Assembly: GCF_006345805.1 (NCBI RefSeq) | Contig: NC_043000.1 | Location: 12,958,001 to 13,022,000, forward strand | Length of the DNA: 64,000 nt | Source of the DNA: Octopus sinensis | Taxonomy: Eukaryota | Reading direction: 5' to 3' | Part shown: positions 34,901 to 37,082 of the stretch, piece after piece | Numbering within the stretch: position 1 is the stretch's first letter | Layout of the letters: every line of letters begins with the position of its first letter | Program-made: the position numbers and the translations under genes | The notes under the pieces: generated by a model | What the model was told of the DNA's origin: nothing | Databases searched by the model: none | The model's input: only the letters and a program-made list of their open reading frames with translations

Positions 34901-35924
34901 TGATGATTTAGAACTCTTTACCACATCAATGTGGTTGTTCAACCTGCTAGAATAGGAGTCAACTTTCCTCAAATTACAGTTTAATGTATTGTAAAAGATA
35001 AACCATCAGAAAAGGTAGTCTAGGTACATAATACTACAAAAAAGATCAAGAGTCTTAGATCATGAAGTATGCTTGAGAAGATGCAGGTCTTCATCTACAC
35101 AACTGTACCACACAATCCGATACTTATAAATCCTACCTGTTACTATTATCACAACACCCACTGCCCCATCATAAAGCTGACTTTGTAATGTAGTCAGATA
35201 GCCAAATGGTACTCCATATAATATGACCATATTTTATAAATTCTATCCTAATCAAATAGCACACTGCACCCACTGTGAATATAACAAGACTGCTAAACAT
35301 TACCCCTGTTATTTCTGGCAGCATTTTTTATTACATAATGCCAGTGTTACTTAAAGATATAGGTGGGAAACGTTTCCCAGACAAAACAAGGAATTAATTC
35401 TCTGAGCAGCATCTTGGGAGGCTGCTCTATCAGCAATTGCATAATTCTGAATCCATTGCTTTCTCCATTTCATGATTGGTGCTTAAAGAAACACAGGATT
35501 TTGGGAGTCCTTACCTAGAGCAAGTAATTTCTACACAGGTAGCTTACAGAGATTGAAGTAGTGGTGAGCAGAAAACTCAAAAGTGGGAGTCTCTTTTCTT
35601 TATTAAAACCTACTACAAACATAAAAATATCACAAAATGAGGCTGCTACTTGATAGTAAGACCATCGATGGGTAACCCAAGAACAAATTGTTAGTTCAAT
35701 TAATAGCAGTTTAAATTGAGGCTTACTTCACTTTGTTTCTCATTTGTTAAGTCCCTAGCAACTACTGACATAATCCTACTCCTGTTTTAAGATAACTGAC
35801 ATAAAAAGGAGAAATTAAGAGAGAGATACTTACACAAGACTGCAGCAATTGTGAGAATTGTCATTTTTAACAAAGTGTCCTGTTTTTCTGGCGACAGGCG
35901 AAGACGCCATGCTTGAGTTACCAT
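1787..35924 (-). CDS. STT3A: Dolichyl-diphosphooligosaccharide--protein glycosyltransferase subunit STT3A, spliced CDS, 3'-incomplete in this window: join(35924-35834,34506-34324,33336-33191,26499-26302,23807-23697,21800-21720,16604-16448,15041-14889,9552-9470,9180-9019,7171-6983,5815-5699,3547-3445,1975-1787)
   Basis: The exons translate into one continuous STT3 protein with HEFDPY, DNEG, SVSEHQP, WWDYG and DNNT motifs. All junctions are GT-AG with matching phases (total 1963 nt). A-type assignment rests on the short N-terminus and residues such as [18 protein letters not shown] and [17 protein letters not shown], compared from memory with human STT3A versus STT3B. The terminal exon was not found in 1-1786. 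Confidence 0.96.
2135..2525 (+). mobile_element. RTE-tail repeat (3' fragment or tail-derived SINE)
   Basis: gcacccactacactctcggagtggttggcattaggaagggcatccagctgtag...catgctagcatggaaagcggacgttaaa(gat)n. Confidence 0.85.
2775..3040 (+). mobile_element. RTE-tail repeat
   Basis: Same diagnostic tail ending (gat)n. Confidence 0.85.
3150..3395 (-). mobile_element. Penelope-like element RT C-terminal remnant
   Basis: [10 protein letters not shown]...[35 protein letters not shown] resembles the PLE RT thumb region (LP.LD, Y.KP, SA.P...K). Confidence 0.55.
3445..3547 (-). CDS. STT3A: STT3A coding exon 13 ([34 protein letters not shown])
   Basis: tccag acceptor, GTAAGT donor. Confidence 0.96.
3800..4152 (+). 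mobile_element. RTE-tail repeat, diverged
   Basis: Same tail; gttaaa(tga)n end. Confidence 0.75.
4805..5184 (+). mobile_element. tRNA-derived SINE, family A
   Basis: A-box TGGCTGTGCAGT, B-box GGTTCAGTCCC, core CCTTGGGCAAGTG, internal (TA)/(TG) microsatellite, gaaacaagtaaaa tail. Confidence 0.85.
5349..5564 (+). mobile_element. Non-autonomous mariner deletion derivative
   Basis: TA TSD; TIRs GAGGGATGCTGAAAAGTTCCTGGC / GCCAGGAACTTTTTAGCTTCCCCTTG; keeps the transposase C-terminus [16 protein letters not shown]. Confidence 0.8.
5699..5815 (-). CDS. STT3A: STT3A coding exon 12 ([39 protein letters not shown])
   Basis: ttcag acceptor, GTAAGT donor; WWDYG acceptor-binding motif. Confidence 0.97.
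5925..6290 (+). mobile_element. Chimeric SINE (family A head + RTE-like tail), degenerate; relatives at 340-540, 18930-19230 and 56870-57290 (minus strand)
   Basis: ggttcagtcccactgcatggcactttgggcaagtg head, then aaacaggtgaaggttggtgacaggaaaggcatcc...ccatgcaa tail. Confidence 0.6.
6325..6605 (+). mobile_element. RTE-tail repeat
   Basis: Same tail. Confidence 0.8.
6983..7171 (-). CDS. STT3A: STT3A coding exon 11 ([12 protein letters not shown]...YWLRHNTPE)
   Basis: ttcag acceptor, GTTTGT donor; [17 protein letters not shown]. Confidence 0.96.
7345..7520. repeat. Degenerate dispersed repeat family F (also at about 7820-7900, 43085-43135, 47140-47265, 54040-54090 and 60620-60790)
   Basis: Shared gtttaac-cc-gg...gagcagacctatgatcaaag...gagggag(a)tttggctgctatttctagcagg-like motifs; class not determined. 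Confidence 0.5.
7943..8095 (-). mobile_element. RTE-tail repeat (short)
   Basis: (cat)n ttagtgtccgctttccatgctggcatg...ggatgcccttcctaacgccaaccactcc. Confidence 0.8.
9019..9180 (-). CDS. STT3A: STT3A coding exon 10 ([12 protein letters not shown]...YPLRNE)
   Basis: tgcag acceptor, GTATGT donor. Confidence 0.96.
9470..9552 (-). CDS. STT3A: STT3A coding exon 9 ([28 protein letters not shown])
   Basis: tgtag acceptor, GTAAGT donor. Confidence 0.95.
10293..10643. mobile_element. hAT-type MITE
   Basis: 8-bp TSD CTCTAGAT (10285-10292 and 10644-10651); TIRs CAGGTGTTCTTAA / TTGAAAACCACTG. Confidence 0.85.
10696..13895 (-). mobile_element. 5'-truncated RTE-clade LINE (APE + RT with embedded PHD finger, about 600-nt 3' UTR, (GAT)n tail); defective
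   Basis: APE motifs SAYAPQ, GDFNGH, IDYIL and HRLVV (ORF 12759-13895); RT motifs KAPG, YRGI and DMEKAFD (12303-12746); YADD at 12248-12237; FRYLG. In-frame TAG at about 12759. Internal deletion joins SLIW to VLQAITEEF and removes the HQGS motif. Confidence 0.93.
14889..15041 (-). CDS. STT3A: STT3A coding exon 8 ([17 protein letters not shown]...SVSEHQP...LFP)
   Basis: ctcag acceptor, GTAAGT donor; SVSE motif. Confidence 0.96.
15042..16447 (-). other. U12-type (minor spliceosome) GT-AG intron of STT3A
   Basis: 5' splice site GTATCCTTT (16447-16439). Branch-point motif TTTTCCTTAATC (15064-15053) lies about 10 nt before the CAG acceptor, with no polypyrimidine tract. Confidence 0.88.
15167..15554 (+). 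mobile_element. tRNA-derived SINE, family E, with 13-bp TSD, inside the U12 intron
   Basis: A-box TGGCCCAGTGG, B-box GTTTCGATTCC; TSD ATATGATACACAT at 15154-15166 and 15555-15567. Confidence 0.9.
16448..16604 (-). CDS. STT3A: STT3A coding exon 7 ([16 protein letters not shown]...LTVTG); ends at a U12-type donor
   Basis: tgtag acceptor. Donor GAA|GTATCCTTT gives T-G-K-I-S-P-W in frame with the next exon. Confidence 0.93.
16765..17167 (+). mobile_element. RTE-tail repeat
   Basis: Same tail. Confidence 0.85.
17645..18058 (-). mobile_element. tRNA-derived SINE, family A
   Basis: Reverse complement of the 4805 element. Confidence 0.85.
19745..20796 (+). mobile_element. RTE LINE fragment with internal deletion and expanded 3' UTR minisatellite
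   Basis: [27 protein letters not shown]...RNLARNE matches the 11.7 kb LINE, then jumps to 3' UTR at about 19984; (GAT)n tail. Confidence 0.88.
20126..20637 (+). repeat. About 61-bp minisatellite with two alternating unit types (about 122-bp higher-order repeat x4)
   Basis: taaaagca recurs 9 times at about 60-62 nt spacing; gcctcgcctggcccc and gctctgtctggcccc alternate. Confidence 0.9.
20966..21351 (-). mobile_element. tRNA-derived SINE, family A
   Basis: Full head-to-tail match to family A. Confidence 0.85.
21720..21800 (-). CDS. STT3A: STT3A coding exon 6 ([27 protein letters not shown])
   Basis: ttcag acceptor, GTGAGT donor. Confidence 0.96.
23286..23502. mobile_element. piggyBac-type MITE, second copy in opposite orientation
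   Basis: TTAA|CTCTTTAGCATT ... AATGCTAAAGGA|TTAA; internally homologous to 1467-1686. Confidence 0.8.
23697..23807 (-). CDS. STT3A: STT3A coding exon 5 ([18 protein letters not shown]...VAYST)
   Basis: tgtag acceptor, GTAAGT donor. Confidence 0.96.
23865..24375. repeat. Microsatellite-rich block: (TG)n, (TA)n, (GA)n, (GATA)n
   Basis: Direct reading. Similar (TA)n tracts at 18453-18505, 32458-32490, 41520-41605, 46850-46882 and 53566-53606. Confidence 0.95.
23951..24076. mobile_element. Tc1/mariner-type MITE in (TA)n
   Basis: TA|CAGGGTGATTCAAAAGT ... ACTTTTGAATCACCATG|TA, plus an internal 21-bp inverted repeat. Confidence 0.8.
24142..24506. mobile_element. pogo/Tigger-like MITE remnant filled with microsatellites
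   Basis: Perfect 26-bp inverted repeat aaccttggtttttgaacaactctgat (24142-24167 / 24475-24500); right end ggttctactg. Confidence 0.6.
25620..26120. mobile_element. Diverged foldback/MITE, about 130-bp imperfect inverted arms
   Basis: aatgcagttt..ctccttgaaaaatgcatttttttgaaa (25637-25680) versus its reverse complement at about 26060-26105. Confidence 0.65.
26302..26499 (-). CDS. STT3A: STT3A coding exon 4 (DAGAGLIAA...SYDNEG...AYFYM)
   Basis: ttcag acceptor, GTAAAA donor; DNEG motif. Confidence 0.96.
26688..27105 (+). mobile_element. tRNA-like SINE, family D (one full copy plus a tandem partial copy)
   Basis: gctggtagaa...gagttcaaattcc (B-box-like)...gactttgcctttcatcctttcgggg...aagtaccagt. 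Other copies at 8745-8944(-), 14638-14800(-), 19241-19477(-), 27330-27440(-), 34095-34265(-), 44075-44245(+), 48780-49120(+) and 62520-62820(-). Confidence 0.8.
28295..32665 (-). mobile_element. Family A SINE split by the BovB-like LINE (tail 28295-28520, head 32490-32665)
   Basis: The two halves are colinear on either side of the LINE, which sits in the SINE's internal microsatellite. Confidence 0.8.
28525..32458 (+). mobile_element. Near full-length RTE-clade (BovB-like) LINE with APE, RT and C-terminal C2H2 finger; inactivated
   Basis: TWNVRTL, SETR, SAYAPT, GDFNA, IDY and DHRL APE motifs (29200-30000); RT 30747-32021. Lesions: TAA at 30298-30300, frameshifts at about 30748, 32010 and 32240, and FADNC in place of FADDC (31464-31478). 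[21 protein letters not shown]; stop at 32408; (TAT)n tail. Confidence 0.93.
33191..33336 (-). CDS. STT3A: STT3A coding exon 3 (LMVTSALLY...LTKELK)
   Basis: tacag acceptor, GTAAGC donor; [15 protein letters not shown]. Confidence 0.96.
34324..34506 (-). CDS. STT3A: STT3A coding exon 2 ([22 protein letters not shown]...GGTIYPG)
   Basis: tttcag acceptor, GTAAGT donor, HEFDPY motif. Confidence 0.96.
34675..34906 (+). mobile_element. RTE-tail repeat
   Basis: Same tail. Confidence 0.85.
35834..35924 (-). CDS. STT3A: STT3A coding exon 1 ([30 protein letters not shown])
   Basis: ATG at 35924-35922. Poly-T tract plus AG acceptor at 35938-35937, so the exon starts at about 35936. Donor GTAAGT at 35833. 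Matches the STT3A N-terminus (EKQDTLLK). Confidence 0.93.

Positions 35925-37082: not shown

Follow-up and report, generated by a model that had tools for sequence, protein, structure and literature searches.

An inverted second copy of the first coding exon of STT3A in the assembly of Octopus sinensis, probably a very young templated insertion

A segment of STT3A containing the start-codon exon and its 5' splice site is present a second time, in inverted orientation, within the same gene in the genome assembly of Octopus sinensis. The second copy (arm B) is very probably a very young inverted templated insertion, known only from this assembly. It is interpreted as a young accident that could form a long RNA hairpin with its source (arm A) and that has no evolved function, because it is absent from the sister species.

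The sequence was taken from GCA_006345805.1 as a stretch of 64 kb (the window), in which STT3A lies on the minus strand. Positions 36733-37082 were aligned with the reverse complement of 35576-35925 at 349/350 identity, giving two arms of 350 nt each separated by a spacer of 807 nt (35926-36732, minus strand). The spacer is ordinary intron sequence and forms the loop of the predicted hairpin. The arm boundaries are sharp, with no identity beyond either end of either arm. A match of this length and identity cannot have arisen by chance. Arm A (35576-35925, minus strand) is the source segment in its original place. Arm B (36733-37082, plus strand) is the inserted copy, with the start-codon exon, the donor and adjoining intron in inverted orientation; its sense reading is on the plus strand and it is consequently antisense inside the STT3A pre-mRNA. 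The genuinely new DNA within arm B spans 36738-37078 (341 nt). The sole mismatch between the arms is C at 35663 (plus strand) versus A at 36995 (plus strand), which in the minus-strand transcript is G opposite U, a wobble pair. An earlier note on this DNA had described the near-perfect repeat, its spacer and coordinates and the G-U wobble, and all of these were reproduced. In a self-BLAST of the window the arm pair was the only repeat above 98.5% identity; the remaining repeats were SINE-like copies of ~185 nt at 95-98% identity.

The gene model built from the window was 100% identical to O. sinensis XP_036357672.1, identifying the gene as STT3A. Octopus STT3A proteins were retrieved with a 653-aa model as query; a 92-aa N-terminal protein query returned only short exon-sized fragments of other animals and no octopus entry. 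The start-codon exon is 103 nt long (35834-35936, minus strand), with the main ATG at 35924 and 30 codons plus 1 nt of coding sequence. Read on the minus strand, arm A contains one base (35925), then the ATG (35924-35922), with 91 nt of coding sequence ending at 35834, and 258 nt of intron in all, including the donor GTAAGT (35833-35828), which falls inside the predicted stem. The acceptor (T15-CTCAG, then AGAGG, at 35937/35936) is 11 nt outside arm A, and the 3' end of the spacer holds this acceptor and its polypyrimidine tract (35937-35957). The isoforms read ...RGNKM across the acceptor, so the ATG exon is spliced to upstream exons and is an internal exon. The end of the upstream 5' exon of annotated isoform X1 was found at 41926-41931 (minus strand; upstream ATG in ATGAAT, then donor GTAAGT), which puts arm B within the intron, and is conserved in O. 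vulgaris and O. bimaculoides. All annotated 5' exons that were located lie at or above 41926 and both arms are therefore within one pre-mRNA; this set comprises 5' exons other than that of isoform X2, for which an exact look-up (P0241) gave no record. If the ATG exon were skipped, the 5' exon would be joined directly to the next coding exon (34324-34506, minus strand). The earlier note had also proposed the gene identity, the arm content (ATG, 30 codons, GTAAGT and intron, no acceptor), the shared pre-mRNA and a next in-frame Met lying beyond the exon encoding HEFDPY, and these points held.

The orthologous site was found without arm B in O. vulgaris (L006 26243/26246) and in O. bimaculoides (L002 14339/14341), the comparison with other Octopus assemblies that the earlier note had suggested. 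In both assemblies the flanks were clean and collinear and contained no Ns. The spacer was collinear at 98.9% identity with O. vulgaris and at 90-93% with O. bimaculoides, and arm A was identical to its O. vulgaris ortholog (350/350) and 96.3% identical to that of O. bimaculoides. Since arm A equals O. vulgaris at every position, the lone difference between the arms is derived in arm B (A at 36995, where the source has G in sense at 35663). The arm sequence is single-copy in each of O. vulgaris, O. bimaculoides and Argonauta (in Argonauta within 10 kb) and is therefore host sequence and not a repeat family. The O. vulgaris assembly is ONT-based and the species diverged from O. sinensis ~2.5 My ago, compared with ~34 My for O. 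bimaculoides (PMC10700109). From the empty O. vulgaris site and the derived base in arm B, the insertion was placed at younger than ~2.5 My. Arm B is known from one assembly of one O. sinensis animal, and the insertion may be private to that animal. Among the three options with which the earlier note had closed, a very recent duplication is the one backed by the comparative data. Exact look-ups of three ORFs (37184-37438, 36033-36272 and 34175-34465) in public assemblies gave no record; octopus shotgun contigs were seemingly not covered.

The empty site of O. vulgaris reads GTCTGAG CTCA TT CCATT AATGAAAA, with AATG directly after CCATT. In O. sinensis 341 nt stand in place of the TT, and CTCA and CCATT are common to the site and the insert. 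On the plus strand these microhomologies are AATGG at 36733-36737 and TGAG at 37079-37082, each present both in the empty site and at the end of the source. Sharing of at least 4 nt and 5 nt at two junctions was obtained at a frequency of ~5e-6 in a simulation with randomly placed inverted copies. The junctions of arm B had no target-site duplication and no tail, and 2 nt (TT) were lost. The microhomology and the 2-nt loss, with neither target-site duplication nor tail, are the signature of a microhomology-mediated template switch (snap-back). A nearby source in reverse complement, microhomology at both ends and an ancestral empty site, as expected for a templated insertion, were all found.

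The event would have started from a break or a stalled fork within the first STT3A intron. A 3' DNA end terminating in AATGG (plus strand) may have paired with the CCATT that borders the start-codon exon at a distance of 0.8 kb, either on the same strand (snap-back) or on a sister template. The 341 nt would then have been copied backwards before a return to the original template through the 4-nt TGAG/CTCA match, with loss of the two-nucleotide TT. One such event could produce a perfect reverse-complement repeat. The 341-nt tract is far longer than the usual template-switch or polymerase-theta inserts (tens of nt), a counterpoint to a template switch. Replication-based FoSTeS/MMBIR is a better fit to the insert length.

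That one template-switch event is enough to make a perfect hairpin is known from earlier work (Loytynoja and Goldman 2017, PMC5453318; Monttinen and Loytynoja 2022, PMC8794818), and de novo miRNAs have arisen from template-switch mutations (PMC10710096). Arm B resembles these in being a nearby reverse-complement copy with short matches at the switch points, in giving a perfect stem in one step and in being datable on the phylogeny through an empty ancestral site. Template-switch mutations are mostly tens of nucleotides long with short loops, the largest tract in an rRNA set being 59 bp (PMC8794818), whereas here the tract is 341 nt with an 807-nt loop. Unlike in the events described, what is duplicated is a protein-coding exon together with the start codon and the splice donor. 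Features shared with snap-back synthesis in alternative end joining (PMC2943611, PMC4912351) and with polymerase-theta templated insertions (PMC5068794) are the microhomology at the two junctions, the small deletion, the inverted template in cis and a possible copying error. Those inserts are typically 3-30 nt with a template within tens of nucleotides of the break, and arm B is far longer with its template 0.8 kb away.

An assembly artefact, in which arm B exists in no O. sinensis chromosome and came from chimeric long reads, polishing or gap filling, would also be expected to give near-identical arms. Arm B is seen in a single PacBio CLR and Hi-C assembly, and duplicated BUSCOs in that assembly are at 5.2%, above its relatives, a general caveat on quality (PMC10700109). 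Palindromic reads from missed adapters, however, produce arms with no spacer between them that are as long as the reads (kilobases), and what was observed is two 350-nt arms with an 807-nt unique spacer and a 341-nt tract cleanly placed in collinear flanks. De Bruijn-based local reassembly requires k-mer overlaps, not 4-5 nt. Short microhomology at both junctions with a 2-nt loss is a signature of biological repair, the one-base difference between the arms shows that the copy is not a simple paste, and self-BLAST found no comparable duplication elsewhere in the 64 kb. Given the junction anatomy, an assembly error appears unlikely. A haplotype-switch or inversion-polymorphism artefact was rejected by reasoning, as an inversion of arm A plus spacer combined with the reference haplotype cannot give L-A-S-A'-R.

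Nearby inverted repeats can be homogenised by gene conversion and are prone to deletion, and arm B could on that basis be one half of an old repeat lost separately in O. vulgaris and O. bimaculoides. This would require two deletions, separate and each almost precise. Between CTCA and CCATT the two empty sites are not alike (TT in O. vulgaris versus ACTGATT in O. bimaculoides), as expected from drift at a site that was ancestrally unoccupied, and Argonauta too has a single copy within 10 kb; an old repeat was therefore considered extremely unlikely. Capture of the exon by a transposon, or as a retrocopy, is barely conceivable, even though the window is rich in active retroelements that include four lineage-specific insertions. 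The copy holds 258 nt of intron and stops 11 nt before the acceptor and is thus not mRNA-derived, and the ends of arm B have no tail, target-site duplication, terminal repeats or transposon sequence. A processed retrocopy was ruled out by the intron in the copy and the absent poly(A) tail. Those four insertions, all specific to O. sinensis, have either a terminal (ATG)n or an initial (TCA)n tract, with a 17-nt target-site duplication for one and endonuclease and RT ORFs in another, so that real transposon insertions at this locus look quite different from arm B. The single copy in relatives and the plain ends agree with the earlier note, which had called arm B host sequence and not a transposon.

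Folding was carried out in silico. In the minimum-free-energy fold all 350 positions were paired, with a duplex energy of -633 kcal/mol, and the full-length 350-bp stem anticipated in the earlier note was thus formed. The 1651-nt region folded at -827.6 kcal/mol versus -289.2 kcal/mol for the 1312-nt reconstructed empty allele. The predicted stem covers the AUG, the 5' splice site and 27 exonic adenosines, of which 16 would recode. As for an ADAR substrate, both strands are in one primary transcript and pair stably in silico; as for an hpRNA locus, a long inverted repeat has 91 nt of STT3A coding sequence in its arm. The antisense copy would be transcribed first, as part of an STT3A intron, and could pair with the exon as the latter emerges, giving a 350-bp intramolecular dsRNA that includes the AUG and the 5' splice site. 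Such a dsRNA would suit ADAR well as a substrate and might also be cut by Dicer. It is possible, though doubtful, that the allele exists and that carriers already show a molecular phenotype. This may be hyper-editing of the STT3A pre-mRNA (with recoding of the N-terminus or loss of the AUG), splicing that leaves out the start-codon exon, or the production of siRNAs directed at the parent mRNA. Since STT3A is essential and in other respects intact, the most likely situation is a small or buffered effect, or else an allele that is rare or heterozygous.

An evolved cis-regulator, that is an editing-complementary sequence or a self-antisense attenuator tuning STT3A through ADAR editing, exon skipping or siRNAs, was judged very unlikely. 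Its attraction is a predicted stem that is thermodynamically overwhelming and spans the AUG, the exonic adenosines and the 5' splice site. The long dsRNA of inverted genomic repeats is the main ADAR substrate and the main source of hyper-editing across Metazoa (PMC5625713), and in Drosophila inverted duplicates of target genes become hpRNA silencers (PMC10317233). Arm B is nevertheless missing from the sister species and the outgroup, and with one substitution and no bulges there has been no time for shaping by selection. A marked loss of this essential oligosaccharyltransferase subunit would be harmful, and a literature search on STT3A, octopus and RNA editing found no paper linking them. The self-antisense attenuator offered in the earlier note does not stand, as arm B shows no conservation in O. 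vulgaris or O. bimaculoides. The GluA2 Q/R site is an exon-intron duplex with an intronic editing-complementary sequence, and here too an intronic antisense segment would pair, before splicing, with an exon in its own pre-mRNA. Functional editing-complementary sequences are short, imperfect and conserved, whereas arm B gives a perfect 350-bp duplex, lies upstream of the exon and is unconserved; promiscuous hyper-editing is predicted from this, and not site-selective editing. Young plant MIRNA genes were reportedly born by inverted duplication of their target gene, a finding said to be that of Allen et al. in 2004. Arm B is like Drosophila hpRNA loci in being an inverted partial gene duplicate giving a long near-perfect hairpin complementary to that gene (PMC10317233). 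Those hpRNA and MIRNA loci are transcribed as units of their own and act in trans, and their small RNAs have been demonstrated, whereas the present hairpin is predicted from the DNA, would form in cis in the pre-mRNA and has the functional STT3A exon itself as one arm.

If the allele is private or artefactual, it is only a caution for annotation and editing calls at the locus. As a mutation it is a clean, datable case in which one event gives a perfect 350-bp hairpin with the empty site kept in two relatives. The length of the event is ~10 times that of the template-switch events commonly reported, and the sequence involved is the start-codon exon and 5' splice site of a housekeeping gene that is essential. 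Were the allele segregating in O. sinensis, animals with and without it would provide a natural experiment on how a cephalopod cell deals with a long and perfect duplex of exon and intron, whether by editing, splicing, RNAi or nuclear retention, and on the beginnings of editing-complementary sequences or hairpin-RNA genes. Should it be real and have a phenotype, it would be a snapshot of the birth of an editing-complementary sequence or cis-hpRNA by a single template switch, in an essential gene of an animal that edits its RNA heavily.

An Rfam scan of the whole window gave no matches. Logan transcript contigs L003-L005 were considered for mapping the octopus 5' UTR and rejected, as they encode a 703-aa protein with an MKTAQAW N-terminus common to cuttlefish P0243, a sequence that points to a probable origin in a cuttlefish or squid relative.

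Chromosome record CM016862.1 (locus L001) of the Octopus sinensis assembly GCA_006345805.1 matches the window at 100% identity. STT3A runs on the minus strand, where its ATG lies at 35924; the 14 coding exons mapped between there and 1779 all have GT-AG borders, and the final ∼55 aa of the coding sequence lie past the window start. The gene identity proposed in an earlier note was retained, since the 653-aa model built on the window shows 100% identity to XP_036357672.1, the annotated STT3A isoform X1.

The inverted repeat described in that note was reproduced at the same coordinates. 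Arm A, the start-codon exon segment (35576-35925, minus strand), and arm B, its inverted copy (36733-37082, plus strand), are 350 nt each, complementary at 349/350 positions and separated by an 807-nt spacer. Identity ends sharply at all four arm boundaries. The sole mismatch is C at 35663 versus A at 36995 (both plus strand), which gives a G-U wobble pair in minus-strand RNA, as had been claimed. Self-comparison of the window returned no second pair above 98.5% identity; the remaining repeats are dispersed, SINE-like, ∼185 nt long and 95-98% identical. Arm A comprises one leader base, the ATG and 91 nt of coding sequence; its intron portion is 258 nt in all and includes the GTAAGT donor (35833-35828, minus strand). 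It covers 30 codons and excludes the acceptor of the ATG exon (T15-CTCAG/AGAGG at 35937/35936), which lies 11 nt beyond the arm, again in agreement with the first description.

On the protein models the start-codon exon is an internal exon. The isoform X1 proteins of O. sinensis and O. bimaculoides read MN/RGNKM and the O. vulgaris model protein reads MTDVGVS/RGNKM, likewise continuous through the acceptor. The X1 upstream exon ends in ATGAAT at 41931-41926 (minus strand), followed by a GTAAGT donor, and is conserved in O. vulgaris and O. bimaculoides. The O. vulgaris model, from an annotation made with Iso-Seq data (PMC10700109), placed a 14-nt microexon at ∼42257 and the first exon at ∼54088 of the window (both minus strand), the latter 18 kb upstream of the main ATG. 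These located 5′ exons, from isoform X1 and the O. vulgaris model, are all upstream of arm B; on this annotation both arms would be carried in one transcript, as the shared pre-mRNA claim requires, and a start site within the spacer, for example for isoform X2, is less likely. STT3A has several alternative 5′ exons, one of which has an in-frame upstream ATG (ATGAAT/GTAAGT) and yields an annotated 708-aa isoform. Short upstream ORFs precede this upstream ATG.

The orthologous site was aligned in two relatives. In O. vulgaris (L006, GCA_951406725.2) window positions 37847-37079 aligned to 25472-26243 and 36737-33000 to 26246-29990; in O. bimaculoides (L002) 37382-37078 aligned to 14034-14339 and 36744-36222 to 14341-14855. 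Arm B is absent from the site in both species, with no Ns nearby. The exon region is single-copy in each, and one copy was found within 10 kb in Argonauta. In gene orientation the site reads GTCTGAG CTCA TT CCATT AATGAAAA in O. vulgaris, GTCTGAG CTCA ACTGATT CCATT AATGAAAA in O. bimaculoides and GTCTGAG CTCA (341 nt) CCATT AATGAAAA in O. sinensis. This alignment resolves the 350-nt arm B into 341 nt of new DNA (36738-37078) and 4 and 5 pre-existing nt that match the ends of the source; the TT is gone from the insertion site in O. sinensis. In a simulation of random inverted 341-nt copies drawn 0.3-3 kb away in O. vulgaris sequence, matches of ≥4 nt at one junction and ≥5 nt at the other arose with a frequency of ∼5e-6.

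Arm A is identical to its O. vulgaris ortholog at 350/350 positions, and the arms differ only by a G-to-A change on the plus strand of arm B, which may have been introduced either during copying or by a later substitution. Locally, O. sinensis and O. vulgaris diverge by ∼1-2%; these species split ∼2.5 My ago, and O. bimaculoides split ∼34 My ago (PMC10700109). Judged from the polarity of the arms, the local divergence and these dates, the insertion arose after O. sinensis and O. vulgaris separated, and it may be polymorphic or confined to the animal that was sequenced. Among the origins first offered, a very recent duplication is the one supported by the empty ancestral site.

Comparison with the O. 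vulgaris and O. bimaculoides sites revealed no target-site duplication, tail or foreign sequence at the junctions of arm B, in keeping with the view that it is not a transposon. The four other O. sinensis-specific insertions absent in O. vulgaris (55645-55875, 38218-39147, 19774-20796 and 10695-13892) are all retroelement-like, with ends formed by (ATG)n or (TCA)n tracts. One is a SINE-like copy with a 17-nt target-site duplication (ACATAATTTAGCAAATT) and another is a 3.2-kb LINE with Exo_endo_phos_2 (endonuclease) and RVT_1 (reverse transcriptase) ORFs. Transposition can thus be distinguished from the arm B event in the same DNA, and the four insertions suggest retrotransposition into STT3A since the O. 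vulgaris split ∼2.5 My ago. A nearly intact LINE at 29098-32021 (plus strand; 400-aa endonuclease ORF and 424-aa RVT_1 ORF) occupies an STT3A intron in antisense orientation and is also present in O. vulgaris. Tandem repeats of ∼60-64 nt inside dispersed repeats create long spurious ORFs (20068-20754, 37572-38027, 38258-38737, 52430-52837 and 10746-11144) and probably belong to an octopus SINE family as its internal arrays; 20068-20754, the single copy scanned, had no Pfam match. A 76-aa ORF at 51318-51548 (plus strand) matched DDE_1 (E 7e-6) and represents a pogo/Tigger-type DNA transposase fragment.

The anatomy of arm B agrees with a template-switch event that involves two switches. A 3′ end terminating in AATGG (plus strand) would anneal to the CCATT 0.8 kb back at the edge of the exon, using either the nascent strand (snap-back) or the opposite template; 341 nt would then be copied from the arm A segment before return to the original template via TGAG/CTCA. 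Such a process is known from template-switch mutations, which can produce perfect hairpins in a single step (PMC5453318, PMC8794818, PMC10710096), and from snap-back synthesis in alternative end joining (PMC2943611, PMC4912351, PMC5068794). The 341-nt tract is roughly ten times longer than is usual. This length points towards a replication-based route (FoSTeS/MMBIR), and arm B would be an unusually long new case of an already known mutation type.

An assembly artefact was considered improbable. Arm B is known from one PacBio CLR assembly of one animal, and that assembly has raised BUSCO duplication (PMC10700109). However, a missed-adapter palindromic read predicts kilobase-long arms that meet at a point, local reassembly requires long k-mer overlaps where the arm B junctions share just 4-5 nt, and a haplotype switch over an inversion is unable to produce the observed order. 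None of the three would be expected to leave a 341-nt tract that sits in otherwise collinear sequence with a 2-nt loss and junction microhomology of 4-5 nt.

The sense pre-mRNA was folded with ViennaRNA. All 350 arm positions were predicted to pair, as claimed for the stem, with a duplex energy of −633 kcal/mol; the 1651-nt region folded at −827.6 kcal/mol and the reconstructed empty allele (1312 nt) at −289.2 kcal/mol. Transcription reaches the antisense arm before the exon arm. In the predicted hairpin the acceptor would fall within the loop, 11 nt away from the stem, and the stem would enclose the AUG and 5′ splice site. Across Metazoa the classic substrate for ADAR hyper-editing is long perfect dsRNA derived from genomic inverted repeats (PMC5625713), and inverted gene duplicates can turn into hairpin-RNA silencers (PMC10317233); we infer that the arm B hairpin may affect editing, splicing or silencing. 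Of the 27 adenosines in the coding portion of the start-codon exon, 16 would change an amino acid if edited; the affected codons include the AUG (M to V) and codons for K, Q, E, D, T and I. Skipping of the 103-nt exon is predicted to delete the main ATG and to put the upstream ATG out of frame. The next in-frame Met lies beyond the HEFDPY exon, as the earlier note had it, in the exon starting at 33336. The intact state of STT3A and the identity of its protein to the O. vulgaris one speak for an allele that is tolerated, has a weak effect or is rare. The suggestion of an attenuator gains no support from conservation, arm B being absent in O. vulgaris and O. bimaculoides. Within arm B (36733-36871, plus strand) the ATG, 30 codons and GTAAGT donor are all still intact, so that any antisense transcription of the intron would meet a ready-made first coding exon.
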